Source of the DNA: Macrostomum lignano
Taxonomy: Eukaryota
Length of the DNA: 64,000 nt
NCBI GenBank assembly: GCA_002269645.1
Contig: NIVC01000797.1
Coordinates: forward strand, 124,001 to 188,000
Direction: 5' to 3'
Positions 5,161 to 61,664 of this stretch are shown in pieces. The stretch's first letter is position 1. Every line of letters starts with the position of its first letter. Both the position numbers and the translations under genes were made by a program. The notes below the pieces were generated by a model. The model had not been told where the DNA came from. It saw only the letters and a program-made list of their open reading frames with translations, and did no database searches.

Positions 5161-8100
5161 CTAGATGCTATCGTAGGACTCTCCGCCGCCTCGCCTGCAC
5201 CTGCCAGCCAGCAGGCGTTTCAGTTCGAGAAAGGTGAAAACTGCGCCATCAGCTGCCAACCCGGGCAGTGACATCCAGAACTCCAAATTGGGCACCATCT
5301 GGAGCCCGGATCGTTGTCTCGAATAGCGGTTGAACAATATCCCAGCCAGCAAGTAGACGGTGACCAGACAGAAGAAAATGATAAGTAGTACATCTCCGCC
5401 GCTCATGCCTCCTCCGTTTGACCCGTCTGTGGCTGTCGGACAGGCATAGCGGCTTCTCAAATCCATAGTTAGCTGGTTGCCGGAGGCGCCCTGCGTGCTC
5501 ACTGACGACTCTGCTGAGTCTGCAGAGGAAAATTATCAAAACTTTATGCCAAGTTTTATACATTCAGACCAGTCGCAAAGAAGGACGCTTGCAATTGCGA
5601 TTGCTTTCTCTGCACTGTTTCTACCACTGCAGGGGGCTAATTGTAGCCTAGTGGTTGGAGCGTCGGTCCCACGACTGAAAGGTCGGGAGTTCGATCATCG
5701 ACCCACTCGGAACTATTTTGTGTCCTTAAGCAAGACACTTAACTCTGCATTGCGTCAGTTCACCCAGCATTAGCTGGGATAATTGAGGGTGTGTGCGTGG
5801 CGACCCCCCCCCCCCCAGTCCTTAGACTGAACAGCCGTACGCAGCCTTAGTCAATTAGCCTTAGTCAATTAGGGCAGCTGTAGTCAATTATTATTAATAA
5901 TAATATTAATATATTCTAGCACCAGATTTACGAGAACAATATCCTCGCATTCAGAAGTTCCGAAAGTCTCAGCTGCAAATTAATCCAAAATGAATGAGAG
6001 TCAGACGAGAAAAAAATTAGGGTCAGACTAATAAAGAATGAGAGCTATACAAGTGGATTGAAATTACTCACTTTTATCGCAAACCAAGTTAACAGTTGTA
6101 GTTCGGGTCGAATCTCCACTGAGATAGCGGAGGTACAACTGACTGTTGGTTGGGTCGATACCAAACTTGGCAGACTTTTGCGCTCCAAAGTCTGTGTATG
6201 TCTGTGTAAATCCGAATGTGAATAGGCAGGTGGCTCATTTGAAATGAACTGAGAAACCCACTGAAGACACCTGAAAGGAACTGGGAAGCACGTTGAAGAC
6301 ACACCTGAACTGAACTGGGAAAACTCGCTGAGTACACACCTAACATGAATTAGGACACCCGCTGAAGACACCCCTGAAGAGAACTGGGGAAACTCGCTGA
6401 AGACACCCCTGGAGAGAACTGGGGAAACTCGCTGAAGATACCCCTGAAGAGAACTGGGAAACTCGCTGAAGACACCTGAAGTGAACTGGGAAACCACCTG
6501 AAGACACCCCTGAAGAGAACTGGGAAACTCGCTGAAGACACCCCTGAAGAGAACTGGGAAACTCACTGAAGACACCCCTGAAGAGAACTGGGAAACTCAC
6601 TGAAGACATCCCTGAAGAGAACTGGAAAACTCGCTGAAGACACCCCTGAAGAGAACTGGGAAACTCACTGAAGACATCCCTGAAGAGAACTGGGAAACTC
6701 GCTGAAGACACCTGAAGAGAACTGGGAAACCCGCTGAAGACACCTGAAGAGAACTGGGAAACTCGCTGAAGACACCTGAAGAGAACTGGGAAACCACTGA
6801 AGACACACCTGAAAAGAACTGGGAAGCACGCTGAAGACACACCTGAAAAGAACTGGGAAGCACGCTGAAGACGCACCTGAAGTGAACTGGGAAACCACCT
6901 GAAGATACACCTGAAGAGAACTGGAAAACTCGCTGAAGACACCCCTGAAGAGAACTGGGAAACCAGCTGAAGACACACCTGAAGAGAACTGGGAAGCACG
7001 CTGAAGACACCTGAAGTGAACTGGGAAACCACCTGAAGATACACCTGAAGAGAACTGGAAAACTCGCTGAAGACACCCCTGAAGAGAACTGGGAAACCAG
7101 CTGAAGACACACCTGAAGAGAACTGGGAAGCACGCTGAAGACACGTGAAGTGAACTGGGAAACCACCTGAAGATACACCTGAAGAGAACTGGGAAACTCG
7201 CTGAAGACACCCCTGAAGAGAACTGGGAAACTCACTGAAGACACGTGAAGTGAACTGGGAAACCACCTGAAGATACACCTGAAGAGAACTGGGAAACTCG
7301 CTGAAGACACCCCTGAAGAGAACTGGGAAACTCACTGAAGACACCCCTGAAGAGAACTGGGAAACTCACTGAAGACACCTGAAGAGAACTGGAAACTCGC
7401 TGAAGACACCCCTGAAGAGAACTGGGAAACTCACTGAAGACATCCCTGAAGAGAACTGGGAAACTCGCTGAAGACACCCTGAAGAGAACTGGGAAACCGC
7501 TGAAGACACCTGAAAGAACTGGGAAACCACTGAAGACACACCTGAAGAGAACTGGGAAGCACGCTGAAGACACACCTGAAAAGAACTGGGAAGCACGCTG
7601 AAGACGCACCTGAAGAGAACTGGGAAACCCGCTGAAGACACCTGAAGTGAACTGGGAAACCACCTGAAGACACCTGAAGAGAACTGGGAAACCCGCTGAA
7701 CACACCTGAAGAGAACTGGGAAACCCGCTGAAGACACCTGAAGTGAACTGGGAAACCACCTGAAGACACACCTGAAGAGAACTGGGAAACCCGCTGAACA
7801 CACCTGAAGAGAACTTGGGAAACCCGCTGAAGACACCTGAAGTGAACTGGGAAACCACCTGAAGACACCCTGAAGAGAACTGGGAAACTCGCTGAAGACA
7901 CCCTGAAGAGAACTGGGAAACTCGCTGAAGACACCTGAAGAGAACTGGGAAACTCGCTGAAGACACCCTGAAGAGAACTGGGAAACTCGCTGAAGACACC
8001 TCTGAAGAGAACTGGGAAACTCGCTGAAGATACACTTGAAGAACTGGGAAACCGCTGAAAACACCCTGAAGAGAACTGGGAAACTCGCTGAAGACATCCC

Positions 8101-8828
8101 TGAAGAGAACTGGGAAACTCGCTGAAGACAACCCTGAAGAGAACTGGGAAACTCGCTGAAGACACCTCTGAAGAGAACTGGGAAACTCGCTGAAGATACA
8201 CTTGAAGAACTGGGAAACCAGCTGAAACACCCCTGAAGAGAACTGGGAAACTCGCTGAAGACACCCCTGAAGAGAACTGGGAAACTCGCTGAAGACACCC
8301 CTGAAGAGAACTGGGAAACTCGCTGAAGATACACTTGAACCGAACTGGGAAACCAGCTGAAGACACACCTGAAGAGAACTGGGGAAACTCGCTGAAGACA
8401 CCCCTGAAGAGAACTGGGAAACTCGCTGAAGATACACTTGAACCGAACTGGGAAACCACCTGAAGATACACCCTAACCATAAAGCAAGGATTTTCACTCA
8501 CATAGATAATGCGAAGCATTTCCTGGCAAACTGCGGCATCAGTTTGGCCAGAGCCGCACTGGAACGGCAGGCAGGGATTAAACTGATAAGTATACCCATC
8601 TGCCGCTTTATAGTTAAACGCCGGACCAGGTGTTGACTGTAGCGGTGACAAATCAATAAACTGGCCGTCCGTGAGTCGACACGAGCAACTGCTGAGCTGC
8701 TCAGCGCACACCGCCGCAGCTGCCGATACTGTTGGCGGCGAGGCCTTTGATGTGGCTGTAATTAATACTGCCATCAACTGCGTAGCCAGTAGGCGCAGGT
8801 TGAAATATAAAGGATTCATGACTATCAA
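5161..8828 (-). CDS. MRH-domain type I membrane protein, M6PR/ATG27-like; exons 8828-8502, 6201-6072, 5519-5161
   Basis: Signal peptide; YQFNPC...AAVCQ; exon 2 YTDFGAQKSAKF...LYLRYLSGDSTRTTTVNLVCDK; DLRSRYACP; TM GDVLLIIFFCLVTVYLLAGILFNR; VPNLEFWMSLPGL; C-terminal YDSI. Donors GTGAGT (8501, 6071) and CAG acceptors give consistent phases 0 and 1. Confidence 0.88.
5632..5910 (+). mobile_element. tRNA-derived SINE in intron 2 of the M6PR-like gene
   Basis: A-box TAGCCTAGTGG (5644-5654), B-box GGAGTTCGATC (5686-5696), CORE-like GTGTCCTTAAGCAAGACACTTAACTCT (5720-5746), tail of TTAGTCAATTAG repeats and (ATT/AAT)n. Confidence 0.75.
6240..8472. repeat. About 33-bp minisatellite (GAAGAGAACTGGGAAACTCGCTGAAGACACCCCT) filling intron 1
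   Basis: Continuous tandem copies; source of the many SSQFSSGV-type ORFs. Confidence 0.97.
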
Positions 8829-11326: not shown

Positions 11327-14300
11327 CTAGAGATCGCCGAAGTCGGTCGCGCCCGCCAGGTGTGCAGGCGGCGAGCAGACAAACGGGGCGGTGGAATTCG
11401 ACGACTGTTGAAAGGTATCAACAATGCTGATCAAGGTAGTCAGGGTGCCAATAACAAAGCCCATCAGGCCGAAGGACACGATGAACAGGTTCTTAGCGTG
11501 AGAGCAGGCGGAATTCCGGCTAGACGATGAGGCCGAAGATGAGCCTGGTTCGTCTGTTACGTTGTAATCGTCGGATTCTGTAAACAATGGGGGTTTGGCG
11601 TGCAATATTCGCAAGAGGGCTGTGGGGCCTTCAGCGACATGATCCCACAACCACACAGCGCTAAGGTTATTCTGCACATTCTGCTGACTCGTGAGCACAT
11701 TCAACATACATTCGGAACACCCGGCCGGTTCGGCCGGCTGGCGAAGGGGCCAGCCAAGGTTAAGTCGCAAAAATGTCCGCCCGATAAAACATAACAAATA
11801 TGCACTAATTACTAATTAGATGACGAGGCATTTAGCTTTTAGAACTACAGTTATGTTACTCCTGCCGTTTACCCAAAACTTTAGGTAAGGTTTTGCTTAG
11901 TTTTTTCATTGGTAGCTAAGCTGCATTTTTGATAGCAAAGTAAGTTGCACGGCCGGTATAAATCAGAGGGGGAGTTGCGCATGCAACAAGCCACAAATGA
12001 AAGTGTTTGAGCAGCATGGAATCGAACCAGGATGTCGTGTGGCGCGAGAGTCTAGCCATAAAATCTCATTACAGAGTAATTAACAATCGGTAATAGAAAT
12101 TAATCAATCAAATGTATAATAAAGTACTTTTAAAAGTACATTTAGATCTGGCGTCTCAGAATCACTCACCTACAATGGGGCCGCTAAACACCATGTAATC
12201 AATGATAGGCGGAAAGATCAAAGCCAGACAAGAGCTGCTGAATGCGCCAATGAGAGCAATCATTAAATCCAGGTGAGGCACAACAACGGCGGCCGCGAAG
12301 GTGAACAGCACCAGGCCGATCCTGATGGCGGCTTCGGCAACTTGCCGACGCCATGGGCCGAAAATTCGAGCGTTGGCCCAGCCGACAATGATAACAGCCG
12401 GCACGTAGAACTGCAGCCCGTAGGAGATGTACAGCGAAGCGGCAAACAGCGGCCTGATGAGCTGGTAGACCCACAACTTGTCATTAATCGTATAGGTGAT
12501 GGAGCCTTGCACGCTTTCGTTGAATTTCAAATAGCCGTAGAATCCAACAGCAGTGTAGGAGCACGTCACAATGGTCATGCCCAGCTGTAGTACGCCGGTA
12601 AAGCCGCCAAACTCCTCCGGCCTGTGCATACGGGACTCGATTGGCAATACTAGCGAAATGCCTTCGAATGCGAATATAATTAAACCGAATGCTATTGGCC
12701 ACAGATTGACCGGCTTTATTAACGCGTATTCTCTGTAGTCTGGCAGATCCTGTATAAATAATAAGATCAATTAATTTAATTAAGCTATTAACGCATCAAA
12801 CACTTCGAAAGATACGAATATGCGATTAGCTGTAGCGTGGTTGATAATAATGACACACTGTATGTAGCTAAAAAAAGTAACAAGGGCGTGAGGATGGGCA
12901 ATACAGCACGGGTGGGGTAGAGATTTTAAATTGTCCGACTAATGTACATATGCTTGAGCGGAGGATAATGTACATTGCAGGCTTGGAGCCCGGGGAACGT
13001 GACACGATGGGCAATAAAATAGGGGCAGAGAATTCACAATCTAACGACTAGTGTAGCTCGTACATAGGCTAGCGTGACCGGTAATGTACATTAAGGACGC
13101 AGCAGCTGAAACCCCCCCCCCAGTCTATGCCCAGGGGCCATAAAATTTAGTTGTAGAAAAAGTAGCGGAGCTTGCGTTAGTAGATAAAGTAATAACAAAA
13201 GTAGGAAGCCATACAAAAAAGTATCCTATTGTATTGTATCAAACAAAACTACTGAGTTAAGTAACCTATTACTAGTAGTAGCATATTTATTGTTCGACCC
13301 AATATTAAACAGACAAACTTGCCATCAAGTAGACATGCGATTAAATAATGACATTAGAAATGCAAATCAAACGTGAAATCATATTTAGCTTAGCTTATAA
13401 AATTAAATGTTAGAATACGAGCTGCTTAATAAGAGTATTAATGTCTAACGTGAGTAGATATTAATAGATTAGTAATAAAAATATAAAGACAATCGCGAAA
13501 TTAGAAACGAAAAATCTGAATCATAGAGAGGAAAGCAACAAACAAAAACTGAAACAAGTAGATAAACACGGAGGCAAAAAACACAGCCACAATTCTGACC
13601 TGCAAGCAGTAGGTAAATACGAGGACCAATCCAATAGCGGTCATCACATTAGCCAGCATTGAGAAGTAGCTCAGCAGTCTAAGATTCCGAACGAACACGT
13701 AGGGCAGAAGGCAGACCATCACCAGAACCTTATAGATATTTACATCCCAATTAGAGGAGCCCGGCTGCAGGTTGCAGTCGACTAGCTGGTGCAAATTATC
13801 CGACACGAACAGGATGTACACGCAGCAGAATCCAATTTGCGTTATCAATAATGAAACGTTCACGAATGACCTGAATGCGCCCGAGTTTAGTGGCGTTAGA
13901 ACAATAATTGAAAACGCATGTAGTTAATAACACCATATGAGCATATATATGGCACGGTTAGGGGTAGCCCGGCTCAAAGTCCTTCGTGGGTTAAGCTGCT
14001 AGACAAATAGCAAAATTACAGCAAACTTAAAATGCTACCAATGAACCATTACACAATTGCCTTAGTAGTTTTCCTGGACTCTACTTCAGTACCTGTCTTG
14101 GAGTCTACCTCAGTACCTGTCTTGGAGTCTGCCTCAGTACCTGTCTTGGAGTCTTCCTCAGTACCTGTCTTGGAGTCTGCCTCAGTACCTGTCTTGGAGT
14201 CTGCCTCAGTACCTGTCTTGGAGTCTGCCTCAGTACCTGTCTTGGAGTCGATCTCAGTACCTGTCTTGTAGTCTGTCTTAGTACCTGTCTTGGAGTCTAC

Positions 14301-16441: not shown

Positions 16442-17938
16442 CTACATAGGTGCATCGGAATAGTTAGCCAGGTGCACAACTCGATTCGGTTGGCACTCTA
16501 ATCTGCAAAGCGGGCACCTGCCGGTGAGTTGCAGACAGCGCACAATGCAAGCCCAACAGAACACGTGACCGCAGAGGGCGATTGCGCTGGCCTCAAGAAC
16601 TCGATCGCAGCACAATGGACAGATTCGATTTAATCGGCCATTGTTATTATTGGCTTCGGCTTCGAAAGTCTGCTTCTCCTGCAAAGACATCGAATCTGTT
16701 GGATTATCCGACGGCTCTGCAGTTGGAGCGGCCGCGCCTGCGGCAGCCAATGCCGAGGCTAGGGAGCGCATTTGATTAACTGCGCGCCCAGCTAAGCGCG
16801 CCAAACTCAGCCAGCCAATCAGGCGATACAGAGTCTCGGTCACGTGACCCAGGCCGGGACGACTGCGCAGATAATTAATACCCAGAACTCGCTTGCTTAA
16901 TTGATAATAGGAACCGTTGATGTAGAATAAAGCGCTGTTCAACTCGTACGCGCTGGTTGCTAGGGCGCTTAAACGGCTTAGCAATGCCAGTCGACGTCTT
17001 TGAATAGGTTCTGACAGCGTCAGATCGGAGCGACACCTGTGCTCAGCCCGTCTGAGCAGCCACAGCAACAGGTCGGGGAACAGGCACTGCAGTAGGATTA
17101 GGAATAGGCGAGCTCGACTACCGGGGAGACGGCGGCGACTGCGGTCGACCTGGCGGAGATAGACGAGATTGGTGAAGCCTAGCAACTATAAAGCAGCGGT
17201 ATAGCAACCACGTAGCAACCATAAGCAATTAAAAGAAAGCATAAGCAAGAACAAGCAACTATAAGCAACCACATAGCAATCATTAGCAACCATAAGCAAT
17301 TACATAGCAACCGCATAGCAACCGTAAGCTAGCATATGCAACCACATAGCAACTGCACAGCAATTGCATCTATATCAACCAAAAGCAACCACGTAGCAAC
17401 CGCATAGCATGCACAAGCAACAAACAGCATAGTAACTATATAGCAACGGTATAGCAACCACATAGCAACCGCATAGCAACCATAAGCAACTGAATAGAAA
17501 CCATAAGCAACTGAATAGAAACCATAAGCAACGGCATAGCAACAATAAGCAACCGTATAGAAACCATAACAACCGCTTAGCAACATTCCTAGTTCCTTAA
17601 CCATGGCGTTTGAAACCTTATCTAGAAACTTGTCCAGTCCGCACCTGCACAAGATTGACGTACTCTTCGCCAAGAGTCTGCAAGCACTGCGCAGTGGACG
17701 CCCCGTAGTACAAAGCTTTCGAGGCAACTTGACCGAAAGCAGACAGTCCCGACCTGCAGGCGGTGTAGCGCTCCAATCCCAGAACTGCCAGCGCTAATCT
17801 GTCCAGGTGCTCAGCTATCCTACTAATCCACAATTCGTCCATACGATAAGCTCGGACTAACTCCGCGTGACTTGGCAACAAACTGGATGCTGTAGTAGCA
17901 TTAGACTTTGCCGAAGTTGATGGCTCTTTAGAATCCAT
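16442..17938 (-). CDS. PEX10: Peroxisomal RING E3 ligase peroxin 10; exons 17938-17645, 17149-16442
   Basis: ELVRAYRMDE N-terminus; signature QTLGEEYVNLVQ|VD joined across a phase-0 intron; YQLSKRVLGINY; C-terminal C3HC4 RING CPLC...CGHVFCWACI...CPLCR. Confidence 0.95.
17185..17585. repeat. Degenerate low-complexity TAGCAACC-type repeat in the PEX10 intron
   Basis: Repeated ATAGCAACC/ATAAGCAAC motifs. Confidence 0.85.
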
Positions 17939-18730: not shown

Positions 18731-19366
18731 CTACTGCAGATGCGGCGACCCAGTCGCTCTCAGACATTTGAATTCGTCAGTCTCCATGTAGGCCCGCAAC
18801 TTGGGTCTGGCGGCGAACTCCGTGTAGAATGCCTTCAATACCGGAGTGTTGTCAAGAGATTCCGGCCTGAGCAGTTGCAGGTAGTAGAGCACATCAAACA
18901 GTGCATAGTCGGCAATGGTCAGTTTACCCAGCGCCAGGTGCTTGGCCGAAGCCGGCTGAGCAGCCAGACGAGTTTCAAAGATTTCCAACATATCGGGCAG
19001 CGAGTTCAGAAACGGTTGTAGCAATTTTTCAAAGTCAATGTGCACCACGTTTAACAGACGATTGCGCAAGTCCAAGGTCTGGTCTAGCCACATGTCTACC
19101 TGGGCCTGCTCGATGCTATTAGAACCCATTAGGCCGTGCTCGCGAGCAAGGTAGCGAGCAATGGAATGCGACTGAGCAATCTGGATTGAACCATCGACTG
19201 TGAGCACTGGCAGCTGTTTGAACGGATAGTTGGGCTTGGCAGCCGGCCAATTGGCTCTGTCGTACTCGGTGTACTTGTATGGAATGCCCTGATCGGCCAG
19301 CATCAGGCGGATTAGATTGGCTTTACCCTTGGCTGGCAAGTAGGTCAATTCGTATTTCTGCGACAT
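18731..19366 (-). CDS. Glutathione S-transferase, Pi-like (GST1), intronless, 211 aa
   Basis: YELTYLPAKG (catalytic Tyr position), LMLADQG, PFKQLP, QSHSIARYLAR, LTIADYALFD; ATG at 19366; TATAAAA upstream at about 19486-19492 on the minus strand. Confidence 0.95.
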   Translation of the reverse strand: MSQKYELTYLPAKGKANLIRLMLADQGIPYKYTEYDRANWPAAKPNYPFKQLPVLTVDGSIQIAQSHSIARYLAREHGLMGSNSIEQAQVDMWLDQTLDLRNRLLNVVHIDFEKLLQPFLNSLPDMLEIFETRLAAQPASAKHLALGKLTIADYALFDVLYYLQLLRPESLDNTPVLKAFYTEFAARPKLRAYMETDEFKCLRATGSPHLQ

Positions 19367-19817
19367 AATCAATATTTTCTCCGATATAAGCTTAGTTGTT
19401 ATAAGTTGCTTCTGGTGTTATCTCGTAAGCGACGCAAAAGTCAACTTGCTTTTCGAGGCCAGCAACACGCTCAAGGTGTAAGAGTTTTATAGCTAACCCA
19501 CTTCGATTGAAAAGCCGCGAGTCGCTTTAGTTGATCAAACGTCTTCCAAAGTCCACCCCACAGCTTTGCACAAGCAGCAAAGTGTTATAGTGTTATCTAA
19601 GTGTTTTGTGTGGCAAATTTAAACCTGATAATCTAAACAAAAGTAAAATTTCTACAGTATAAACAAATACAAATTGTTCGCATGGAGACCAGCCATAACG
19701 AAAAAGTTCAAAATGTTGAGCGCGCATCTCGAAAATAAAAATTTCAAATACCTGGTACCTCTGAATTCCGAATCAATCTGATAAGTAGAAATTGAAATAA
19801 AAATTACCAGCAGCTTT

Positions 19818-21570
19818 GACTAGAATCTCCTTACAGAATGACCGACAGTTCTATGACTAGAACCTCCTTACAGAATGACCGACAGCTCTATGACTAGAAC
19901 CTCCTTACAGAATGACCGACAGCTCTATGACTAGAACCTCCTTACAGAATGACCGACAGCTCTATGACTAGAACCTACTTACAGAATGACCGACAGCTCT
20001 ATGACTAGAACCTACTTACAGAATGACCGACAGCTCTATGACTAGAACCTCCTTACAGAATGACCGACAGCTCTATGACTAGAACCTACTTACAGAATGA
20101 CCGACAGCTCTATGACTAGAACCTCCTTACAGAATGACCGACAGCTCTATGACTAGAACCTACTTACAGAATGACCGACAGCTCTATGACTAGAACCTAC
20201 TTACAGAATGACCGACAGCTCTATGACTAGAACCTACTTACAGAATGACCGACAGCTCTATGACTAGAACCTCCTTACAGAAATGACCGACAGCTCTATG
20301 ACTAGAACCTACTTACAGAAATGACCTGCAGCTCTATGACTAAAATCTCCTTACAGAAATGACCTGCAGCTCTATGACTAAAATCTCCTTACAGAAATGA
20401 CCTGCAGCTCTATGACTAGAACCTCCTTACAGAATGACCGACAGCTCTATGACTAAAACCTACTTACAGAAATGACCGGCAACTCTATGACTAGAACCTA
20501 CTTACAGAAATGACCTGCAGCTCTATGACTAGAACCTCCTTACAGAATGACCGACAGCTCTATGACTAGAACCTCCTTACAGAATGACCGACAGCTCTAT
20601 GACTAGAACCTCCTTACAGAAATGACCGACAGCTCTATGACTAGAACCTCCTTACAGAAATGACCAGCAGCTCTATGACTAGAACCTCCTTACAGAAATG
20701 ACCGACAGCTCTATGACTAGAACCTCCTTACAGAAATGACCTGCAGCTCTATGACTAGAACCTCCTTACAGAATGACCGACAGCTCTATGACTAGAACCT
20801 ACTTACAGAAATGACCGGCAACTCTACGAGTATGACTAGAACCTCCTTACAGAAATGACCTGCAGCTCTATGACTAGAACCTCCTTACAGAATGACCGAC
20901 AGCTCTATGACTAGAACCTACTTACAGAAATGACCGGCAACTCTACGAGTATGACTAGAACCTACTTACAGAAATGACCTGCAGCTCTATGACTAGAATC
21001 TCCTTACAGAAATAACCTGCTGCTCTATGACTAAAATCTCCTTACAGAAATTACCGGCAGTTCTATGACTAGAACCTACTTACAGAAATGACCTGCAGCT
21101 CTATGACTAGAATCTCCTTACAGAAATAACCTGCTGCTCTATGACTAAAATCTCCTTACAGAAATTACCGGCAGTTCTATGACTAGAACCTACTTACAGA
21201 AATGACCTGCAGCTCTATGACTAGAATCTACTTACAGAAATGACCAGCAGCTCTATGACTAAAATCTCCTTACAGAAATTACCGGCAGTTCTATGACTAG
21301 AACCTACTTACAGAAATGACCTGCAGCTCTATGACTAAAATCTCCTTACAGAAATTACCGGCAGTTCTATGACTAGAACCTACTTACAGAAATGACCTGC
21401 AGCTCTATGACTAAAATCTCCTTACAGAAATGACCTGCAGCTCTATGACTAAAATCTCCTTACAGAAATGACCTGCAGCTCTATGACTAAAATCTCCTTA
21501 CAGAAATGACCTGCAGCTCTATGACTAAAATCTCCTTACAGAAATGACCTGCAGCTCTATGACTAGAATA
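19818..21570. repeat. 37-38 bp minisatellite (CTATGACTAGAACCTCCTTACAGAATGACCGACAGCT)
   Basis: About 46 direct copies between GST1 and GST2. Confidence 0.97.
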
Positions 21571-21583
21571 TCCTTAACAAAAC

Positions 21584-22173
21584 CAAGGACCACTAGAAGA
21601 AGAAGGACGGGACACTTCGTTTCTTGGAAATTTTATTAAAGGCTGATTTTCACGGAAAAATGCACTAGCGAGCTGGGAACATTTCACATTTTTTACTTTA
21701 AAATGGTGATAGCTTTTTATTGGAAGCAGATACAAAGCTCTTCTTTTGATATAAATTACAAAACATGTTGCTCCAACGGATTTTATAAAGATTTTTTTTG
21801 AATAATTGATCTTCATATTATTTTAGTTACTATAGCTACTTATTTTATATAAAAAGTATAAAACTAAAATGAATAAGCAGTGAATTGGGCAGCCAACAGT
21901 TTTTTTAATGACATATTGCTAAAATAGATGCATTTGATTAATAATATGAAGATCAATTATTCAAAAAAATCTTTATAAAATCCGTTGAAGCAACATGTTT
22001 TGTAAGTTATATCAAAAGAAGAGCTTTGTATCTGCTTCCAATAAAAAGCTATCACCATTTTAAAGTGAAAAAAAAGTGAAAATTTCCTATCTCGCTAGTG
22101 CATTTTTCCGTGAAAATCAGCCTTAATTTCCAAGAAACGAAGTGTCCCGCCTTTCTTCTTCTAGTGGTCCTTG
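21584..22173. mobile_element. Non-autonomous foldback DNA transposon (P-superfamily-like), ~235-bp TIRs, 8-bp TSD
   Basis: Arms 21584-21822 and 21940-22173 are near-perfect inverted repeats starting CAAGGACCACTAG; AACAAAAC is duplicated at 21576-21583 and 22174-22181. Confidence 0.9.
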
Positions 22174-22662: not shown

Positions 22663-23295
22663 TCAAAGATGATCTGTCCCAGTGAACTTGGCCTCCTTAA
22701 TGTCGTCACGGTTGAGGAAGGCGGCGATTTTCTCGCGACCGCCAAAAGCTTCGTAGAACGCCTTGACAGAGGGCAGACTGTCGGAGCAGCTGGGGCTCAG
22801 AGCCACCAGAGCTAGCAGCAGGTCGAAGAAAATGTAATCAACAAGGGTAATCTTGCCAAGCAACAGGTGAGTCCTGTCCTCCTGACTCGCCAGCTGCTTC
22901 TCAAACGGTTCCAGTAGGGCTGGAACAGACTCTAGAAACGGCTGCTTGCCGGCCTCATAGTTTTCGTAGATCATTCGCAAAAACTTCATTCGAATGTCGA
23001 TTGTCTGATCGATCCACATTTCAATTTGGGCCTGCTCGATGTTGTTGCTACCCATTAGGCCGTGCTCGCGGCCAAGGTAGCGAGCGATGGTGTGAGACTG
23101 AGATATTTTAGTTTCGCCATTGATCGTGAGCACTGGAAGTTGGCCAAATGGCGTTGTAGGCTTCACTTCAGCCCAGGTGTCCTTAGTGATTAAGTTGAAC
23201 TTGTACTCAATAGACTGGTCCTCCAAGATCAGACGGATCATGTTGCCCAGGCCTTTCACTGGGAAATAGGTCAGCTCGTAGGTGTTGCTGGACAT
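22663..23295 (-). CDS. Glutathione S-transferase, Pi-like (GST2), intronless, 210 aa
   Basis: YELTYFPVKG, TPFGQLP, QSHTIARYLGR, ITLVDYIFFD; complete ORF. Confidence 0.95.
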   Translation of the reverse strand: MSSNTYELTYFPVKGLGNMIRLILEDQSIEYKFNLITKDTWAEVKPTTPFGQLPVLTINGETKISQSHTIARYLGREHGLMGSNNIEQAQIEMWIDQTIDIRMKFLRMIYENYEAGKQPFLESVPALLEPFEKQLASQEDRTHLLLGKITLVDYIFFDLLLALVALSPSCSDSLPSVKAFYEAFGGREKIAAFLNRDDIKEAKFTGTDHL

Positions 23296-25142
23296 TGCGG
23301 CTGCGGGTTTGCAATAATTTTGTGTTCACTTTATATGCTGGAATTGAATGCGGTTTTTAAAATGTGGTGCACTATAACTAAAACGACACCACAGTCAAAG
23401 TTCACGTCTACACACTTATGGAGACTAAACTTAAGTGGTTACCTGGATAATTTTCTCACAAATTTTTGATATTGTTTCCTATATAGACTAATACCGCAAT
23501 ATCTGTCAGGATAAAACCATTGAAAAAAGCCTGTGAAAACTTACAAGAATGAATGAAGACTTATATTAGAATACCGTCTGTGTAAAAGTTATAGCTCGCA
23601 GAGTTAATAAGTAGCTAGTTTAGAAATCGGCGGCTAGAGTGAGAGAGAGAGAATCTGCCATGAGTCTACCAGCTGCTATATATTTACGGACAACTGCAGT
23701 CTATCCACGTGGTTGAGGTGGGTTTAGACGAGGTAATGATCGATACACTGAATAAGCCTAATGCGCAGTTGGCAGAGCTGTATACGACTCGTAGAAGAAA
23801 CGAAACGACTTGGGACTTGAGTGGCCATTCCAATTCGCTACACAATTTATGATTGGCATAGCAGTTGGAAAGGCAGACATAGTCCATTGCAGCTGCAGCA
23901 GCTGGTTAGTCTAACGTATTTAATATTGAGCTGAGCGAATGAACGCGGACCTGGATTTTTCAGAGCCCTGGTAAGTTGAGCTACCAGAGCATGCAGGGGA
24001 TACGGCTACTCAATAATACTACCCTGGAGCAAAACTAGCTAGATTAAACTAGTCGCGAGTGGGGATCAAATCCAATACATGCCCAGAAGTATAAGACGCG
24101 CAATTAACAATTATGATTTGTACTTTTCTCTCTACAGCTAATTTGTGTTCCTCTGACATTATGTAAACATGTTTCTTGTCATCATTGAAATGTGTTCCAA
24201 ATGAGAAAAATTACATTGTATATGGACTCTATGTCATTCCTTGGTTTCCCGTCCAGATGTTTAACTTAAGACGTCCACCCTATTCAGGTACTATCTCTCA
24301 CGACCAGAGAGAGTTGATTAGATAGTAAGAAACCCGCACTTTGTAGAAAATAAAATGAGTCATTTAGCCTAAAAAGATTATGACGGACAAGCAGACCCCG
24401 TACCGTCTCTAATCGAAAGCATACAATAACCTCCAAAAACAGTTTAGAAGAGACTAACTTCTAGGTTGCTTTACGAAAAGACTTCACTAGTGGAAACTAG
24501 ACAAAATGATTACACAGTGTCACTATTACACGTATCTCCCTTGGCTTATCGTACAACACACGCTACACATTGTAATTCTAAAATCCTAGATCTGAAACTA
24601 ATATCAATTAAATTGACAGACTAATGCTTTTACAATCGGATCGATTTTCTATTAAATTATCTATACCTAACACTGATTAATTGACTCGTAAACATTCTCA
24701 TTCTCTAAGCTGCTTCAAACATAGAAATAAACAGTAAACCACTCTACTAAGAAATAAGTAGAACTAAACGAGTTATATTTAATTACTAGAAATGGTGTGC
24801 AGTTTTTTCTGCAGATAGAATATTTTAACAAATTTTCTGCAACACAACGGTGAAGAAACGAAGTAATTCTAGCCAGAAAAATTGAATTGAATTTTAAACT
24901 AGAAGTGATGCCGTTTGCTTAACATATATATATAAAATGTTTAATCAAAAAGTATACGGAAAAGATGTTCTAAAAGCATTTAGATAAACAGACAACTGTA
25001 ATTGTACTAGGAAAATGTCACAGCTAGGGCTATAGAAGATGGAATGCTAACGATAGTAAACTACAAGGGTTGTTAGCTCTCATATCAGTCATATAGTTTC
25101 AATTTCAATTCCACACTGCTTTCCAAGAACAATCGAGCAAAT

Positions 25143-25769
25143 TTAAACATGCATCGATCCGGTGAACTTCATGGATTTGATCTCTGGCTTTTCCAGGAAA
25201 GCGTGCAGATTCTTCCTGGCACCGAAGCTGGTGTAGAACGCCTTGACGTGGGGCGAGCTGTCCAGACAGGTCGGGCTCAGAGCGGTGAGCACGAGGAGCA
25301 CATCGAACACGATGTAGTCAGCCAGGGTCAGCTTGCCGAACAGCAGGTGAGCACTGTCTCCAGTCAGCTGCTTCTCAAACGGCTCCAGCTGGGCTGGAAT
25401 AGAGTCGATAAACGGCTGCTTGCCGGCCTCATAATTTTCGTAGATCATTCGCAAAAACTTCGTTCGAATGTCGATTGTCTGATCGATCCACATTTCAATT
25501 TGGGCCTGCTCGATGTTGTTGCTACCCATTAGGCCGTGCTCGCGGCCAAGGTAGCGAGCGATGGTGTGAGACTGAGATATTTTAGTCTTGCCATTGATCG
25601 TGAGCACTGGCAGCTGGCCAAATGGCGTTGTAGGCTTAAAGTCAGCCCAGGTGTCCTTAGTGATTAAGTTAAACTTGTACTTGATAGATTGGTCCTCCAA
25701 AATCAGACGGATCATGTTGCCCAGGCCTTTCACTGGGAAATAGGTCAGCTCGTAGGTGTTGCTGGACAT
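25143..25769 (-). CDS. Glutathione S-transferase, Pi-like (GST3), intronless, 208 aa; chimera of GST2 5' and GST4 3'
   Basis: Complete ORF. Residues 1 to about 130 match GST2; the sequence after PFEKQL matches GST4. Confidence 0.95.
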   Translation of the reverse strand: MSSNTYELTYFPVKGLGNMIRLILEDQSIKYKFNLITKDTWADFKPTTPFGQLPVLTINGKTKISQSHTIARYLGREHGLMGSNNIEQAQIEMWIDQTIDIRTKFLRMIYENYEAGKQPFIDSIPAQLEPFEKQLTGDSAHLLFGKLTLADYIVFDVLLVLTALSPTCLDSSPHVKAFYTSFGARKNLHAFLEKPEIKSMKFTGSMHV

Positions 25770-26547
25770 TGCGGCTGCGGGTTTGCATATATATATAAAT
25801 ATAATGGAAGAACTTCTACAGATGTTTTCTATGTCTGTATGCTATGTAAAGCGTAGCTGGGGATCAAGGGGGTGGCTTTAAAAGTGTTGAAAGGAGTCAA
25901 CAGAAATGGTCAGTTAATTGTTGTGGACATCCGGCATGACTTTTGTCTAGTTTTTAGGTGGCTTCATAGGATGGTTGGTGCACTATTGAAAACCAGAAAT
26001 CGACACCACAATCAAAGTTGGCGTCTAAAGTTTTATCGAGACTAAACTTGAGTGGATGCCTGGATCATGGTCTCTCAAATTTCTGCTTTTGTTTCCTACA
26101 TTGACTATACCTCAATATATCTCAGGGTGGCACCATTGAAAACTCTATCCAACGATAAAAACGCTAGTGAAAACTTACAAGAATGAAGACTTATTCTAAT
26201 ACCGTCTATTTATAAGTTAAAGAATTAGTGATAATAACCAGACAAATGAACTGAATCTAAAACCGGATATGATGCCGCATGCTTAAAATATGTATATAGT
26301 GTTGATTATAAAATGATACAAACTAAAATTGTTTATAAATGTTTATAAATAATGTAAATGTTTATAAATAAATAAACACACAACAGTTGTCATAATACAG
26401 CTAGAAAATAGTCATAATTAGGGTTATAGAAGATAGTAGAATGCTAACGATAGTGAACTACAATAGTTTTAAGCTCTCATATCAGCCGTATAGTTTCGAT
26501 TTCAATTGCAGACTGTTTAAAAAACATCATTAATAATCCTAGCCCAT

Positions 26548-27171
26548 TTAAAGATGCGGCGATCCGGTGAACTTCATGGACTTGATCTCTGGCTTTTCCA
26601 GGAAAGCGTACAGATTCTTCCTGGCACCGAAGCTGGTGTAGAACGCCTTGACGTGGGGCGAGCTGTCCAGACAGGTCGGGCTCAGAGCGGTGAGCACGTG
26701 AAGCACATCGAACACGATGTAGTCAGCCAGGGTCAGCTTGCCAAACAGCAGGTGAGCACTGTCTCCAGTCAGCTGCTTCTCAAACGGCGCCAATTCGGTC
26801 GGGATAGATTCAAGGAACGGCTTGAGTCCGTTCTCATAGTCGGTGTAGATCATTTTGGCGAATTTTTTGCGCAAATCGGCGCTCTGGTCGATCCACATTT
26901 CAATTTGGGCCTGCTCGATGTTGTTGCTACCCATCAGGCCGTGCTCGCGGCCAAGGTAGCGAGCGATGGTGTGAGACTGAGCAATCTGGGTCGATCCGTT
27001 AACAGTGAGCACTGGCACCTGGCCAAACGGTGTAGTCGGCTTTACCTGGGGCCAGTTCTCCCCTACCGGCTTGTACTCGTACGGGATGCCCTGATCCTCC
27101 AGGACAATGCGAACCATGTTACCGTAGCCCTTCACGGGAAAGTACATGAACTCGTATTTGTTGCCAGACAT
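26548..27171 (-). CDS. Glutathione S-transferase, Pi-like (GST4), no coding introns, 207 aa
   Basis: Starts at MSGNKYEFMYFPVKG (ATG 27171), where alignment with the paralogs begins; PFGQVP, QSHTIARYLGR, LTLADYIVFD. Confidence 0.93.
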   Translation of the reverse strand: MSGNKYEFMYFPVKGYGNMVRIVLEDQGIPYEYKPVGENWPQVKPTTPFGQVPVLTVNGSTQIAQSHTIARYLGREHGLMGSNNIEQAQIEMWIDQSADLRKKFAKMIYTDYENGLKPFLESIPTELAPFEKQLTGDSAHLLFGKLTLADYIVFDVLHVLTALSPTCLDSSPHVKAFYTSFGARKNLYAFLEKPEIKSMKFTGSPHL

Positions 27172-27491
27172 TTCTAGATTGCTTGTGTTCGTTAGTTTGT
27201 TTTGGTCTGAAATTGAAAGAAATGAAGAATAAAAAACTGTTGTGTAAACTTTCAAAATAAAGTATATTCTCATCAACATTAAAAAGGTCGCCGCCTTTGA
27301 GACTGCGCAGACTGCAAAGATTGGATGGATTGAAGCTCCCGCCCGGTTTTTCATTGTTTTGTTAAACCTTTTTTGAATATCAAAATGGTTGGCCAGGTGA
27401 TAGACGCTAGTCGAAACACACTGCTCACTGGGACGACTTTTCAATGTTGCTGAGTATATAATTAAACAATTTCATTTGTGATTAAACTGCC

Positions 27492-29276: not shown

Positions 29277-30310
29277 TGACAGTAACCTCATACCCTGAAG
29301 CAACCAAGGACAGTAGCCTCATACCCTGAAGCGATTAAGGACAGTAGCCTCATACCCTGAAGCAACTAAGGACAGTAGCCTCATACCCTGAAGTGATTTA
29401 TGACAGTAACCTCATACCCTGAAGCAACCAAGGACAGAAGCCTCATACCCTGAAGCGATTAAGGACAGTAGCCTCACACCCTGAAGCAACTAAGGACAGT
29501 AGCCTCATACCCTGAAGCGATTAAGGACAGTAGCCTCATACCCTGAAGCGATTAAGGACAGTAGCCTCATACCCTGAAGCAATTTATGACAGTAACCTCA
29601 TACCCTGAAGCAACAAAGGACAGTAGCCTCATACCCTGAAGCAACTAAGGACAGTAGCCTCACACCCTGAAGCAACTAAGGACAGTAGCCTCATACCCTG
29701 AAGCGATTAAGGACAGTAACCTCGTACCCTGAAGCAACTAAGGACAGTAGCCTCATACCCTGAAGCGATTTATGACAGTAACCTCATACCCTGAAGCAAC
29801 CAAGGACAGTAGCCTCATACCCTGAAGCGATTAAGGACAGTAGCCTCATACCCTGAAGCAACCAAGGACAGTAGCCTCATACCCTGAAGCGATTAAGGAC
29901 AGTAGCCTCATACCCTGAAGCAACTAAGGACAGTAGCCTCATACCTGAAGCGATTAAGGACAAAAGCCTCACACCCTGAAGCGATTAAGGACAGAAGCCT
30001 CACACCCTGAAGCAACTAAGGACAGTAGCCTCATACCCTGAAGCGATTAAGGACAGAAGCCTCACACCCTGAAGCAACTAAGGACAGTAGCCTCATACCC
30101 TGAAGCGATTAAGGACAGAAGCCTCATACCCTGAAGCAACTAAGGACAGTAGCCTCATACCCTGAAGCAACTAATGACAGTAGCCTCACACCCTGAAGCA
30201 ACTAAGGACAGTAGCCTCATACCCTGAAGCAACTAATGACAGTAGCCTCACACCCTGAAGCAACTAAGGACAGTAGCCTCATACCCTGAAGCGATTAAGG
30301 ACAGAAGCGA
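29277..30310. repeat. 31-bp minisatellite (AGGACAGTAGCCTCATACCCTGAAGC[AACT/GATT]A)
   Basis: About 33 direct copies, often alternating two variants. Confidence 0.97.
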
Positions 30311-30771
30311 TATCATTGCAGAAAATCCAGCTAAACAAGTTTTTGATAAACTTATTTATGTTAACTAGGAGATTTGACACAGCTGATTAGTAACAGAATT
30401 TGCAAAGTTAAGACAAACTGACACGGATACCACAAGCTTTAATGAAATGAATTCATAGTTTAAACAGATTTATAAACACAGGGTTTTGTGTCCGTGTGAA
30501 ATTAGGTCCTGTCTTATCTTCAACCAATTTCACATTATACTTATACTGTAAATAAAAATAATACCTGTGTTCAGTATCAATCAAAACATGTGCCAAGAAA
30601 AACGGTGGGTGGTCGAAAGTTAATGCAACATATCATAGATCAATTATTGTATTTAATATCATAATTTTAAATGCAAACAAAAGTGCAGGATAAGGCATTG
30701 AGGATACTATACTATAATTGGCTTGGCCAAAATCCTGATGCAACGAAGCGCGATTAATGACAGTAGGCTTG

Positions 30772-31247
30772 GAGGGGAATTGCTGAGATGTCAAGGCTTA
30801 CAGGGGGAATTGCTGAGATGTCAAGGCTTACAGGGGAATTGCTGAGATGTCAAGATGTCAAGACTTACAGGGGGAATTGCTGAGATTTCAAGGCTTACAG
30901 GGGGAATTGCTGAGATGTCAAGGCTTACAGGGGAATTGCTGAGATTTCAAGGCTTACAGGGGGAATTGCTGAGATGTCAAGGCTTACAGGGGAATTGCTG
31001 AGATTTCAAGGCTTACAGGGCGAATTGCTGAGATGTCAAGACTTACAGGGGGAATTGCTGAGATTTCAAGGCTTACAGGGGGAATTGCTGAGATGTCAAG
31101 GCTTACAGGGGAATTGCTGAGATTTCAAGGCTTACAGGGCGAATTGCTGAGATGTCAAGGCTTACAGGGGGAATTGCTGAGATTTCAAGGCTTGGGAATT
31201 GCTGAAATGTCAAAGCTTACAAGAGGAATTGCTGAGATTTCAAGGCC
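30772..31247. repeat. 29-30 bp minisatellite (GGGGAATTGCTGAGAT[G/T]TCAAGGCTTACA)
   Basis: About 16 direct copies. Confidence 0.96.
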
Positions 31248-38113: not shown

Positions 38114-40246
38114 GGTGCGGCCATAAATCACTCAAAATCGCAACAAAATGATTTATGACTTTTCGCGTAGGATTGACAGAAATGAATGAAAAAATATACA
38201 TTAGAAAGCTCTTATTAAATAGAAAGTGAAGATAATGAAGAGAAATCGCTAATCGCTAATCCCAAGGTACTTTTAGGGGTAAAACGCATAGCTGTCAAAG
38301 CTGTCACACGCTTGAGTGAATCCGAACAATAGGCTCTGACCTCATAAATCTTGATGGCCTGTCAAAATGATGAAAAAAAAGCTACCGCCCGCATCCTCTC
38401 AGACCATCTGGCGCCCGCTTCAACACTGAGTGAGGCGCAGGTGGCTGTCAGATCAGCTTCGAAAGCGATGATTTATGACCCAAAAAGCTGCGCCTATGTT
38501 ATTATGACTACTAGTATGGCCAGACATTATATCTAGTATAGATTCTATGAAAATTCGCAGAAAAAGGATAAAAATGCCCACTGCCCACTGTTAGTAGGCA
38601 AGTAAGTTTAGAGCCCATGTGCTAGCGCGGGATTTGGGAAAAAGTGCGTCCTCATCACAATGTACATGTATACTGTGCACGGTACATGTAGATCAGGTTG
38701 TATGGAGTTTCGCTCCATATAATGAAACAGTAACAAGTAGTAATTTCAGACGATTTAAAGTTTCCAGCAGCTTGCTTATGAATTTTTTGAGTGTATGAAA
38801 TGAATTGAAATTTTACATGTAGTTTCGGTAAATGGCATTTGTTGTGAGCTTCGAGAGCTCCACCTGTTGCTGTTCTGCTATGTTCGACAAATTTAAATCC
38901 GAGCGAATGAAACTCCGAGGCCACGAAAGCAAACCCGCGGCACTTCGTAGGTACAGAATATCTTGCATGGGTTGATTATGCTGAATTATTGCAACCAACG
39001 TGCGTTAGGTTTAATTTACAATGCTCGTATAGTTCAATGAGAAATTAAAATATAGAGAAGGCCGCGGGCTCATATATCACATGCATTATATTTATGTTAC
39101 TAAAACTTAAATAAGCTGCAATATGTTAAAAAAAGCAAACAGTTCAATTAAATAGGCAAGTTCCAATTTCTCTTTTTTACTTATGGACCAAGTTCGGGTT
39201 GCTCTCGCCTTCGTCCGCAAAGGCAAAAACGATCAGGCGTTAATAAATTTTATGGCCATATTCACTATCATATGATCATATGAAAGCCGCGTCTAATAAC
39301 TTTTTTGACGCACTAGGTTGATAGTATTACGCCCGTGAAAGAGAGAACTAGCTGCTTATCAAGTATACTGTATAATGTAATTGGTAAGCTAACAGAAGTG
39401 GCACATATTCGAAGGCTGCGATATAGCAGGCCGACTAAGGAGCAGCTATAGTACTAACTTTACTTTATCGAGCCTTATGGCTTTGCATGTAAATTTTTCT
39501 TTATCTTATTCGCTCAGACTCATGTAAATACATGTGACTCTGATCAATTAGTTTATAAACTGCCACAACAACGGTTATATAATTAACACACTGTACAATA
39601 ATGTTACCACGTGTCCTTTGATTGAACCGCTTCATGCTTGCACCCCATGACCGGTGATAACACGCCGGCTGTCCTGTTTCTTTCCGCATTGTACAAGCCA
39701 CAGAAAAATTCTTATAATAATTCCTTCTGACCTGCCAAATTTCCGGGTTTAATTCCGTTCTTAATTTAAACTGCAAGCCGGTACTTGCAACTTTGCTATA
39801 GTATTTATACGATTTTCGAGAATTTAATAATAACAATCAGAGCCACCGCAAATTTTTAAATAAACTACATATAGCTTGCGACTTCTCAACCTCAACCTAC
39901 GGGGTACAAGAAAAATTCAATTAAATTAAAAGTTTTTGTTTTCAGCAGCACAAATTTAATTGTTTTTGATACTCAGATTAGTATTACGAGCTATTATTTT
40001 TACTATATACTTGTACTACACGTTATACATGTAGAAAAATGTAAACTATTATATATATAACTAATAAGTTTATCAGAATTATCAGAATTCTAAATTCTAT
40101 TTCATTTAGGATTAAATATCCTACAGCTAATCGAATGCTACTTTAAGTAGGGTTAGTTGTAAACATTTAAAATTTTATTGAGAGCATTAATTTTATATAG
40201 GCTCGTAGTCGCAACAAAAATGATCGAAAACTAATAAAGAATGGAT

Positions 40247-45701
<5,455 letters not shown>

Positions 45702-45709
45702 CTGGATGG

Positions 45710-45945
<236 letters not shown>

Positions 45946-46739
45946 CTCGCGCAGTCAGTCAGTCAGCAGTTGCTGACCGCATGCATTCGCATAGTTTCTG
46001 CCTACCCTAGCAAGCAAAGATGGCAGGCGCACTGCAGCAGACGAAACTTCTGGGTGTCAAGGAACTTCACCCCCCCCCCTCTTCACTCGATGCCAGACGG
46101 CAGGCAGCAGCTCTGTATGAACTGGTATATTATAGTAAGACCACCATTTGTCCTGACTGGCGTACAGCGCAGACTTATTACACTAATTAGGGCACTGACA
46201 GCTTTGCGGAGTTGCAAAACGCTACACAGTTTTGGAAGGTCATTTCTCATTATTTCCCTCTCCCTCCCCGGCTGCTATCCACTTTCTTTTCTCCTCGTAT
46301 CTCCCAGTCTGTATTAAAGAATTCTTCTTTGCCTGTATTCTATATTTTTAGCTATTATAGCCCCGTCTTCTTATCCACATTTTCTGCAACAATTGCTATC
46401 GGCTGCTACATTCTGTTTTGGACTCTATAGCGCAGTTAGTAGTCATTGGGTGAATTAGAAGCGACTTAAGTGTAATGGCTTAAAATGCCTCTTCTAATAT
46501 TAAGGTTTCAAACTATTCTGTTTATAATAAAGTAAAATTGGCTTCAGAAATATTTGCTACAGTTGGGGAACTGTGCGCTGTTATTGGTGTGATTGGCTTA
46601 GTGTAGCAGAATTTAGTGTCTGAACTAAACTTATTCGTACGTATTCTGACGAAGAGTTCATATTTTTGTGTAGCCATGTAGGCTTAGACGGTCACGTTGA
46701 GGCTTTCTTTTCTCTCAACAAACCCGAGGGAAAGGTTGG

Positions 46740-47545
46740 TCCTAAAAATCACAGGGAAATGCAATGGCCCCAAACAGATCATTTAATGAACGGTGGTAGC
46801 CCTAAAAGGATCACTAGGAACGGTGGTTGCCCCAAAAATATCAACGAGTGGTGGTGGCCCCAAAAGAATCATAGAAAACAATGGTGACCCCAAAAGATAA
46901 TAAACAGGGAAGGTGGTGGCCCCAAAAGATAATAAACAGGGAAGGTGGTGGCCCCGAAAGATAAACAGGGAAGGTGGTGGCCCCGAAAGATAAACAGGGA
47001 AGGTGGTGGCCCCAAAAGATAAACAGGGAAGGTGGTGGCCCCAAAGAATCACATGAAACGGTGGTGGCCCCAAAGAATTACAGGGAACAGTACTGGCCCT
47101 AAAAGAATCACAAGGTACGGTGGTTGTCCCAAAAATATCAGCAACGAGCGGTGGTGGCCCCAAAAAATTACAGAAAACCGTGATGGCCCCAAAAGGATCA
47201 CAGGGAACGGTGGTGGCCCCAAAAGGATCACAGGGAACGGTGGTGGCCCCAAAAGGATCACAGGGAACGGCATTGGGCCCCAAAGAAATACAGGAAACCG
47301 TGATGGCCCCAAAGATTCACATGGAACAGTGCTGGCCCCAAAAGGATCACAGGGAACGGTGGTGGCCCCAAAAGGATCACAGGGAACGGCATTGGGCCCC
47401 AAAGAAATACAGGAAACCGTGATGGCCCCAAAGATTCACATGGAACAGTGCTGGCCCCAAAAGGATCACAGGGAACGGTGGTGGTCCCAAAAGGATCACA
47501 GGGAACGGTGGTGGCCCCAAAAGGATCACAGAAAGCGATGGCCGT
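46740..47545. repeat. 28-29 bp minisatellite (GGTGGTGGCCCCAAA[A]GGATCACAGGGAAC), array 1
   Basis: Degenerate tandem copies; same family as 50405-51780. Confidence 0.93.
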
Positions 47546-48261
47546 GTCACCAAAGGAACGCTGCTGGCTCAAATAGAAACGGCAAAGTAATTTTTTGGCC
47601 CAGAAAAAGCTGCTTTTATGGCCAGTGAAAAGACGGTGCACTAATATCCCTTTTGAAGGACGACTTTGTAAAGAGTAAAAAAATGACGCGGTCAGGTTTG
47701 TTTTGTAAAAATACAGTCGATTGATATCTTTATTGCAGACATAACTTTAGCCAGTAAATTCATTATAAGCACTCTAAATACAACCTGGACACCAGATGCC
47801 AAACAAACTTTATATACGCTATTTTTTTTTCAGGCCACTTGATAGGCCTGCAATTTCTTGTTTTGGTCCACTACACCAAAATTGCTGACTTTATATAGGG
47901 AAGACAATGTTTATACCGCAGTCAAATCATTGTGGACATTGTGAACTTTTGTTGCCCAAAAAGAAGTACCTGCATTCTTACTAGGTAAAGTATTAGTATG
48001 CCTTGCAAATTTATTCTGTCTAAAGACACTGAAGTAGTTTTGTCGCAGATCTCTTGCATTGGCTTCTGCATGTGCACACGAAACGCTAACTATACATGTA
48101 CATGTGTTCATGTATATGCATAACGCTTAGAGTTCACCTCCAATGTTCTTTTTAAGGATTTTAAACGCCCTGAATTCCAGAGATGGTAAATAGGGTTTAC
48201 AGCGGCCCTGACAGCCTGACTTTCTCGTCATTAAGTCAGCCAATTTGAGTCCTGTTAGCGC

Positions 48262-61504: not shown

Positions 61505-61664
61505 CTAAAAAAATTTGGTGAAGATCCATGTAGAACATGCTCTGCTCTTATTGCTAAGGAGTCATAAAACAATTTTGCTCTTAACGATTATTTTCGAATT
61601 TCGAATAGTTTTAGAATGGTTCTAAGATAATGCTCTAATAGTGCCTCTCACTGATCCGTGAGGT

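Follow-up and report, generated by a model that had tools for sequence, protein, structure and literature searches.

Unequal crossover between neighbouring related genes has its textbook product in haemoglobin anti-Lepore, in which a beta-delta fusion lies between a retained delta and a retained beta gene, and the hybrid opsin and CYP11B genes are products of the same textbook mechanism. Within clusters of glutathione S-transferase (GST) genes, unequal crossover is responsible for the deletion and duplication variants of human GSTM1, and recombinant genes (MdGST-3/-4) are said to occur in the housefly, on which our literature search returned no relevant paper. Among detoxification genes, the chimeric P450 CYP337B3 of Helicoverpa armigera was formed by unequal crossing-over of CYP337B1 and CYP337B2 (PMC6211633). 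Here we analyze GST3, a gene of Macrostomum lignano found in a tandem array of four GST genes (GST1 to GST4) within a 64,000-nt stretch of contig NIVC01000797.1, hereafter the window, to which all coordinates refer. All four genes are full-length, intronless open reading frames (ORFs) on the minus strand of the window, and we compared them with the same array on two Mlig_3_7 scaffolds (assembly GCA_002269645.1), L001 (NIVC01000225) and L002. GST3 is a pi-class-like chimera, most likely formed by unequal crossover of the anti-Lepore type between the ancestors of GST2 and GST4, that has been kept by selection while conversion patches continued to form. The crossover mechanism is what we infer, whereas the mosaic, the duplicated spacers, the three copies, the selection signal, and the conversion patches are seen in the sequences themselves.

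On one hand, the array resembles haemoglobin anti-Lepore closely. Both have an upstream parent, a fusion made from the 5′ part of the downstream gene and the 3′ part of the upstream gene, and a downstream parent. They also share an in-frame junction inside identical sequence and a duplicated intergenic spacer. On the other hand, haemoglobin anti-Lepore genes are rare segregating alleles whose parents are ~93% identical, while the parents of GST3 are ~60–70% identical outside short blocks, the exchange stretch spans ~18–20 bp, and the chimera is old (flanks 17–22% diverged) and fixed in all subgenomes. CYP337B3 is likewise a detoxification gene of a tandem pair that recombined to an intact chimera, with substrate-contacting parts from two parents; however, a new activity has been demonstrated for it, it is linked to resistance, and it has arisen repeatedly and segregates in populations, whereas the GST3 event looks single and ancient and is known from sequence. 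As in other tandem cytosolic GST arrays, non-allelic recombination and conversion have both been at work here. The human GSTM1 and housefly MdGST genes differ in that they are of the mu or the delta/epsilon class, rather than pi-like, and come from other phyla, and in GSTM1 the recombination takes place in flanking repeats, with whole genes lost or duplicated and no in-frame chimera. Our literature search found no paper on a GST chimera from unequal crossing-over, and none on this M. lignano cluster or chimera.

A single switch between two parental types

The initial annotation of the window had matched the 5′ two-thirds of GST3 and its upstream flank to GST2, and the 3′ third and downstream flank to GST4, with the switch placed in an 18-bp block common to the three genes (encoding PFEKQL). 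Our analyses bear this out, with the earlier coordinates good to ~20 bp. In a codon-respecting alignment, we treated a site as informative if GST2 and GST4 differ there and GST3 agrees with either of them (n = 181 sites). These sites form a GST2-type run followed by a GST4-type run, with six exceptions on the left and one on the right, and the breakpoint is significant: a single switch has a maximum chi-square of 154, which 0 of 10,000 permutations reached (p ≤ 1e-4). The last GST2-type site (25384) and the first GST4-type site (25383) both adjoin the 18-bp block (Table 1), which is identical in GST2 (at 22891) and GST4 (at 26770). Over codons 1–129, nucleotide identity to GST2 is 94.6% (366/387) and to GST4 71.4% (274/384); from codon 136 to the end, identity to GST4 is 96.3% (211/219) and to GST2 61.6% (135/219). 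The junction falls at homologous, in-frame positions within the stretch of identity, and the reading frame of GST3 is intact. The order along transcription, annotated earlier as A - B/A - B, is GST4 (A), GST3 (B 5′/A 3′), and GST2 (B), all on one strand in the window, L001, and L002.

To decide which of the genes is recombinant, outgroups are informative. These were transcript-like contigs from other samples, with full-length A-type genes in L004 and L008, a full-length B-type gene in L003, and a further gene of ambiguous type in L010; being transcripts, they carry no array structure. Neighbour-joining trees with bootstraps were built for separate segments. For the 5′ part, GST2 and GST3 form a clade in 100% of bootstraps, and over codons 1–64 this clade joins the B-type outgroup (96%). 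For the 3′ part, GST3 groups with GST4 (100%), and GST2 with the B-type outgroup (100%). The GST3 copies from the three loci form a clade of their own in both segments (99% and 83%). The segment trees thus identify GST2 and GST4 as the parental types and GST3 as the derived chimera.

The 30 nt immediately 5′ of the junction stand out: GST3 departs from GST2 at 7 positions there, and at 14 in the rest of the 5′ part (357 nt; p = 0.0004). All 7 changes are fixed across the three GST3 copies, 3 of them match the A type, and together they yield I121, D122, I124, and Q127 in helix 5. This cluster could stem from mismatch repair that acted patchily on the heteroduplex of the original exchange, from the end of homology at this point, which would have kept later conversion out of the stretch, or from adaptive or compensatory changes at the newly formed seam between domains.

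Table 1. Positions of the GST genes, gene parts, and spacers in the window.
Feature	Position	Strand	Description
GST4 (parent A)	26548-27171	-	207 aa, pi-class-like GST; A-type throughout, as orthologues in other Macrostomum-like species
Spacer GST4 to GST3	25770-26547	-	778 bp; one copy of the duplicated A-to-B spacer
GST3, whole gene	25143-25769	-	intact ORF, B 5′/A 3′
GST3 5′ part, codons 1-129	25383-25769	-	B-derived; N-terminal domain, helix 4, and nearly all of helix 5
Exchange interval, 18-bp block CAGCTGCTTCTCAAACGG	25365-25382	-	encodes PFEKQL, end of helix 5
GST3 3′ part, codons 136-208 and stop	25143-25364	-	A-derived; helices 6-9 and C-terminal tail
30 nt 5′ of the junction, GST3 codons 120-129	25383-25412	-	excess of differences from GST2
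Core block, GST3 codons 65-98	25476-25577	-	A-type in GST2, GST3, and GST4
Spacer GST3 to GST2	23296-25142	-	1847 bp; second copy of the A-to-B spacer
Extra block, GST3-to-GST2 spacer only	23595-24861	.	1267 bp, exactly between the two homologous blocks
GST2 (parent B)	22663-23295	-	210 aa; both ends B-type like the L003 orthologue; core A-type
GST1	18731-19366	-	211 aa, more distant paralogue; outgroup, outside the fusion

Duplicated spacers

The sequences between the genes carry the same signal as the genes. Upstream of GST3, 25976–26222 matches 23365–23594 upstream of GST2 (72.8% over 254 alignment columns, E 4e-40), and downstream of GST4, 26227–26518 matches 24862–25121 downstream of GST3 (68.6% over 293 columns, E 2e-35). 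Apart from the 1267-bp extra block in the longer one, both spacers are collinear; in the shorter one, the downstream-of-A block and the upstream-of-B block abut. In addition, the 18 nt before the ATG are identical in GST2 (23296–23313) and GST3 (25770–25787), ending in CCCGCAG-CCGCA-ATG. Neither spacer of the window has a match in the 2-kb stretches that lie upstream of GST4 and downstream of GST2, and the collinear, duplicated spacers without a match at the outer edges are found in L001 and L002 as well. That the duplicated spacers end at the outer edges of the array argues against a plain duplication followed by conversion.

The 1267-bp block is present in all three copies of the array and may be an insertion in the long spacer or a deletion from the short one. 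We looked for the hallmarks of a transposable element and found none: the block is single-copy in the window, and neither terminal (inverted) repeats nor a target-site duplication are present.

The chimera in three subgenome copies

The nearest database proteins to those of the array are M. lignano proteins. The genome of M. lignano is reported to have three paralogous subgenomes over ~85% of its length, with a rate of single-nucleotide polymorphisms of ~2%, and 93% of its read pairs have more than one mapping position (PMC10733133). GST3 is intact in the window, in L001 (7543–8169), and in L002 (11423–12049), and its junction is the same in all three. Over the whole GST4–GST2 region, spacers and 1267-bp block included, the three loci are 95.8–96.6% identical, which fits the three described subgenomes. 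Given that the same chimera with the same junction occurs in three copies, GST3 is a real gene and predates the divergence of the subgenomes.

In a genome of very similar subgenomes and pervasive multi-mapping (PMC10733133), misjoins are a real risk, and an assembly artefact might have joined GST2-like and GST4-like reads, or reads of different subgenomes. We regard this as hardly credible for GST3. Its junction, its own fixed substitutions, and its diverged flanks recur in three scaffold-level copies that differ by ~4%; in the trees of both segments these copies make up a separate clade; the pattern of synonymous and non-synonymous differences among the copies is that of a real gene; and GST3 is also contained in two UniProt entries, A0A1I8HV54 (620 aa) and A0A1I8J9W7 (411 aa). 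The initial annotation, which had already argued against misassembly and had taken the gene to be intact, therefore stands on both counts. In these two UniProt models, GST3 is wrongly spliced to its neighbours, as GST4+GST3(+GST2).

Database coverage of the gene is otherwise uneven. In L002, GST3 is annotated as BOX15_Mlig001320g2, between g1 (GST4) and g3 (GST2). In L001 it is an intact ORF yet is absent from the genes called there. The GST3 protein of the window has no exact record and is absent from the protein collection, and gene calling seems simply to have missed the gene on its own scaffold. The GST4 of the window is on record on a third NCBI contig. Relatives of GST3 were absent from JGI metagenome contigs in a back-translated scan, and an exact look-up found no other locus.

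Gene conversion within the array

Conversion has also left its marks on these genes. Codons 65–98, with a 102-nt core (QSHTIARYLGREHGLMGSNNIEQAQIEMWIDQ), are near-identical DNA in GST2 (23002–23103), GST3, and GST4 (26881–26982). Among the three genes, this segment has 2.5 synonymous differences in ~20 sites, against 0.35–0.75 in orthologous comparisons, while outside the core GST2 and GST4 are saturated at synonymous sites. The B-type outgroup differs in codons 65–98 even in protein sequence, and GST2 and GST3 group here with A-type genes in 92% of bootstraps. This points to an older A-to-B gene conversion, by which GST2 would itself be a small mosaic. Smaller patches are specific to single subgenomes. 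For example, GST2 of L001 is GST3-like at two residues, K61 and T103, which are E and M in the outgroup and in the remaining GST2 copies; GST3 of L002 resembles GST2 (GGTG) in a run of four changed bases (GGTT); and a derived C, found in the window copy only, is common to GST3 and GST4 there. These patches, too, point to conversion. Since the GST3 copies of the three loci stay together as a clade in the trees of both segments, exchange after the subgenome split has been minor. The present similarity among the genes is nevertheless no pure record of a crossover, as conversion has also shaped them.

Could conversion alone, acting after a whole-gene tandem duplication, have made GST3? Such a scenario would start from a copy of B or of A with its flanks, followed by a long conversion tract from the other neighbour that covered either the 3′ third plus ~290 bp downstream or the 5′ two-thirds plus ~570 bp upstream. 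The activity of conversion in this array (the A-type core of codons 65–98, K61/T103, the GGTT patch, and the window-only C) speaks for it, as does a 3′ coding part that is less diverged than its flank (see below). However, the spacers are duplicated end to end and their blocks abut, so that the tract would have had to end exactly at the duplication boundary. Moreover, there is no remnant of downstream-of-GST2 sequence below GST3, nor of upstream-of-GST4 sequence above it, and remnants at 20–25% divergence would be detectable. We therefore consider this route improbable.

Relative age and the case for unequal crossover

The upstream flank, at a substitution divergence of 0.170, and the adjoining 5′ coding part, at a synonymous divergence of 0.145, are in agreement (p = 0.73). 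Synonymous differences from the outgroup species amount to 0.5–0.75 per site, and those between subgenome copies to 0.01–0.08. Both halves of GST3 are nested in M. lignano-specific clades, so the event is younger than the split from the outgroup species. The chimera was formed well before the subgenome split, and it is old and fixed rather than a segregating anti-Lepore haplotype.

From this evidence, we propose that a non-allelic homologous exchange took place in a tandem array between a downstream B ancestor and an upstream A ancestor, in or next to the 18 bp of identity that encode the end of helix 5. Such an exchange would have left the array with a second copy of the 3′ third of A, the spacer, and the 5′ two-thirds of B, in the order A - B/A - B. 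It would have happened in the M. lignano lineage, after the split from the outgroup species and well before the genome multiplication that gave the three subgenomes. The chimera would then have been retained by purifying selection and transcribed within the trans-spliced unit of its neighbours, and short conversion patches would have kept passing between the paralogues. The unequal crossover already suggested by the initial annotation gains support from a chimera that lies between retained parents, from a junction in frame within identity, and from duplicated spacers that end as modelled.

Several observations weigh against this reading. None of the three subgenome copies is an array without GST3, which would represent the ancestral A-B state, and the reciprocal, Lepore-type product was not found in them either. 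The homology of the spacers is just 65–73% identity, with many indels. The two halves of GST3 differ in synonymous divergence (0.145 vs. 0.057, though with p = 0.16), and the 3′ coding value of 0.057 is significantly below that of its own downstream flank (0.224, p = 0.004); with a 3′ part less diverged than its flank, later homogenisation or conversion, or constraint, must be invoked. Conversion is demonstrably active here, and mosaicism is possible without any crossover. Finally, the same end product is reached in two steps, by duplication of an A-B pair to A-B-A′-B′ and a subsequent Lepore-type B/A′ deletion to A - B/A′ - B′. This route yields exactly the observed structure, including the duplicated spacers, and tandem arrays do expand and contract repeatedly. 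But it takes two events where one suffices, and the three subgenome copies hold neither a trace of a B-to-A′ spacer nor extra gene copies, so that we see it as unlikely and prefer a single unequal crossover.

Selection, transcription, and structure of GST3

GST3 is a full ORF in all three copies, and the ratio of non-synonymous to synonymous differences (pN/pS) among them is 0.06–0.13. The gene is maintained by purifying selection.

A shared "Mlig" number denotes one transcriptional unit, the underlying RNA-sequencing assembly having been cut by trans-splice and poly(A) signals (PMC5730564). GST2 and GST3 have in common an AG 5 nt upstream of the ATG, and GST4 has a pyrimidine tract and an AG 35 nt upstream of its ATG (27172–27210), matching the 5′ end of its annotated product. 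Both acceptor patterns would fit spliced-leader sites in one transcriptional unit (Mlig001320 g1–g3). Judging by the L002 annotation, GST3 is likely expressed, with mapping ambiguity many-fold in the M. lignano genome.

All four proteins of the array match the Pfam domains GST_N/GST_N_3 and GST_C/GST_C_3 above cut-offs. In a search of solved structures, the top ~30 matches are GSTP1 and other pi-class proteins, with E ~2e-40 for GSTP1 and ~1e-36 for the pi-class Onchocerca volvulus GST2 (PDB 1tu7), while sigma and mu matches are far weaker (1e-28 and below). By this search of solved structures, GST1 to GST4 are pi-class-like, and a sigma-class assignment that we had entertained was dropped, the pi class being clearly closest. 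The likeness to GSTP1 and the pi class includes a match over the whole length (as for 1tu7), a conserved catalytic Tyr (Tyr10 of GST3 aligns with Tyr7 of GSTP1), and the same predicted helix pattern. Unlike vertebrate GSTP1, to which sequence similarity is moderate, the genes here are intronless, arranged in tandem, and part of a trans-spliced unit. The AlphaFold model of GST3 (mean predicted local distance difference test score, pLDDT, of 93) has the canonical GST fold with its order of strands and helices. Helix 4 spans residues 85–110, helix 5 113–134, and helix 6 149–164, and the junction is at the end of helix 5.

By homology to GSTP1, we take F11, V13, and L16 of GST3 to be the N-terminal wall of the substrate site (H-site), and L106 and Y110 to be its helix-4 positions. 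Two of these positions in the B-derived part, L16 and L106, are Y and A in GST4, and the C-terminal tail, in the A-derived part, carries the GST3-specific M206 and V208. A new enzyme with a recombined substrate site, as the initial annotation suggested, is therefore plausible by GSTP1 homology, and the purifying selection on GST3 lends it support. Going further is speculative, and we would give it rather low odds: GST3 might be a naturally "shuffled" pi-class GST with a distinct substrate range, in which I121/D122/I124/Q127 and M206/V208 would represent adaptive or compensatory refitting of the hybrid H-site and the domain interface, and which might have been expressed immediately from one trans-spliced precursor, with no promoter co-duplicated.

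Surroundings of the array

Stop-free ORFs run antisense to two of the genes, one of 207 aa over all of GST4 (26554–27177, +), which is open in L001 too, and one of 127 aa over the 3′ part of GST3 (25149–25532, +); they are probably a by-product of codon usage. After GST1 follow a Pex2/Pex12 RING-finger gene (exon-like ORFs at 16442–17185, −) and an amino-acid transporter gene (11327–13863, −), and this synteny after the GST array is also found in L001 and L002.

Repeats border the array on both sides. Between GST1 and GST2 lies a 38-bp satellite of ~47 copies with 91% matches (19801–21576); the corresponding arrays of L001 and L002 measure just ~600 bp, which means that the subgenomes differ in copy number. 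The satellite adjoins a foldback element of ~590 bp downstream of GST2 (21584–22173), which has long, near-perfect inverted arms (e.g., 110 nt at 97%), is also present in L002, and may be similar to miniature inverted-repeat transposable elements. Upstream of GST4 are two tandem arrays, 29278–30308 (31-bp unit, x33) and 30765–31246 (30-bp unit, x16), both of which recur in L001 and L002 with different lengths. Further away, short-unit tandem repeats fill 6045–8828, 40167–44175, and 45564–51282, where they create long spurious ORFs in several frames and on both strands, and base composition swings strongly along the window. An ORF fragment at 61173–61538 (−) has a 2-Cys peroxiredoxin-like motif and is probably an exon of another redox gene. 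Rfam and transfer RNA scans of 17–32 kb in the window gave no matches.

Implications

The GST-pi genes of M. lignano serve as markers in stress and toxicology studies. A review describes "GST pi-1" as xenobiotic- and stress-responsive in M. lignano, with the paralogue unspecified (PMC11641670). Given the long identical stretches in GST2, GST3, and GST4, a GST3 that is unannotated in at least one copy, and the merged UniProt models, expression assays and read mapping need a paralogue-specific design. GST3 is a new example of a textbook mechanism and does not change the general understanding of it. Its value lies in what has been preserved, namely the two parents, the pair of duplicated spacers, and copies in three subgenomes that evolve independently. 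This makes the array a small model for the retention of chimeric enzymes, for the interplay of conversion and crossover in short tandem arrays, and for the fate of such genes after polyploidy.

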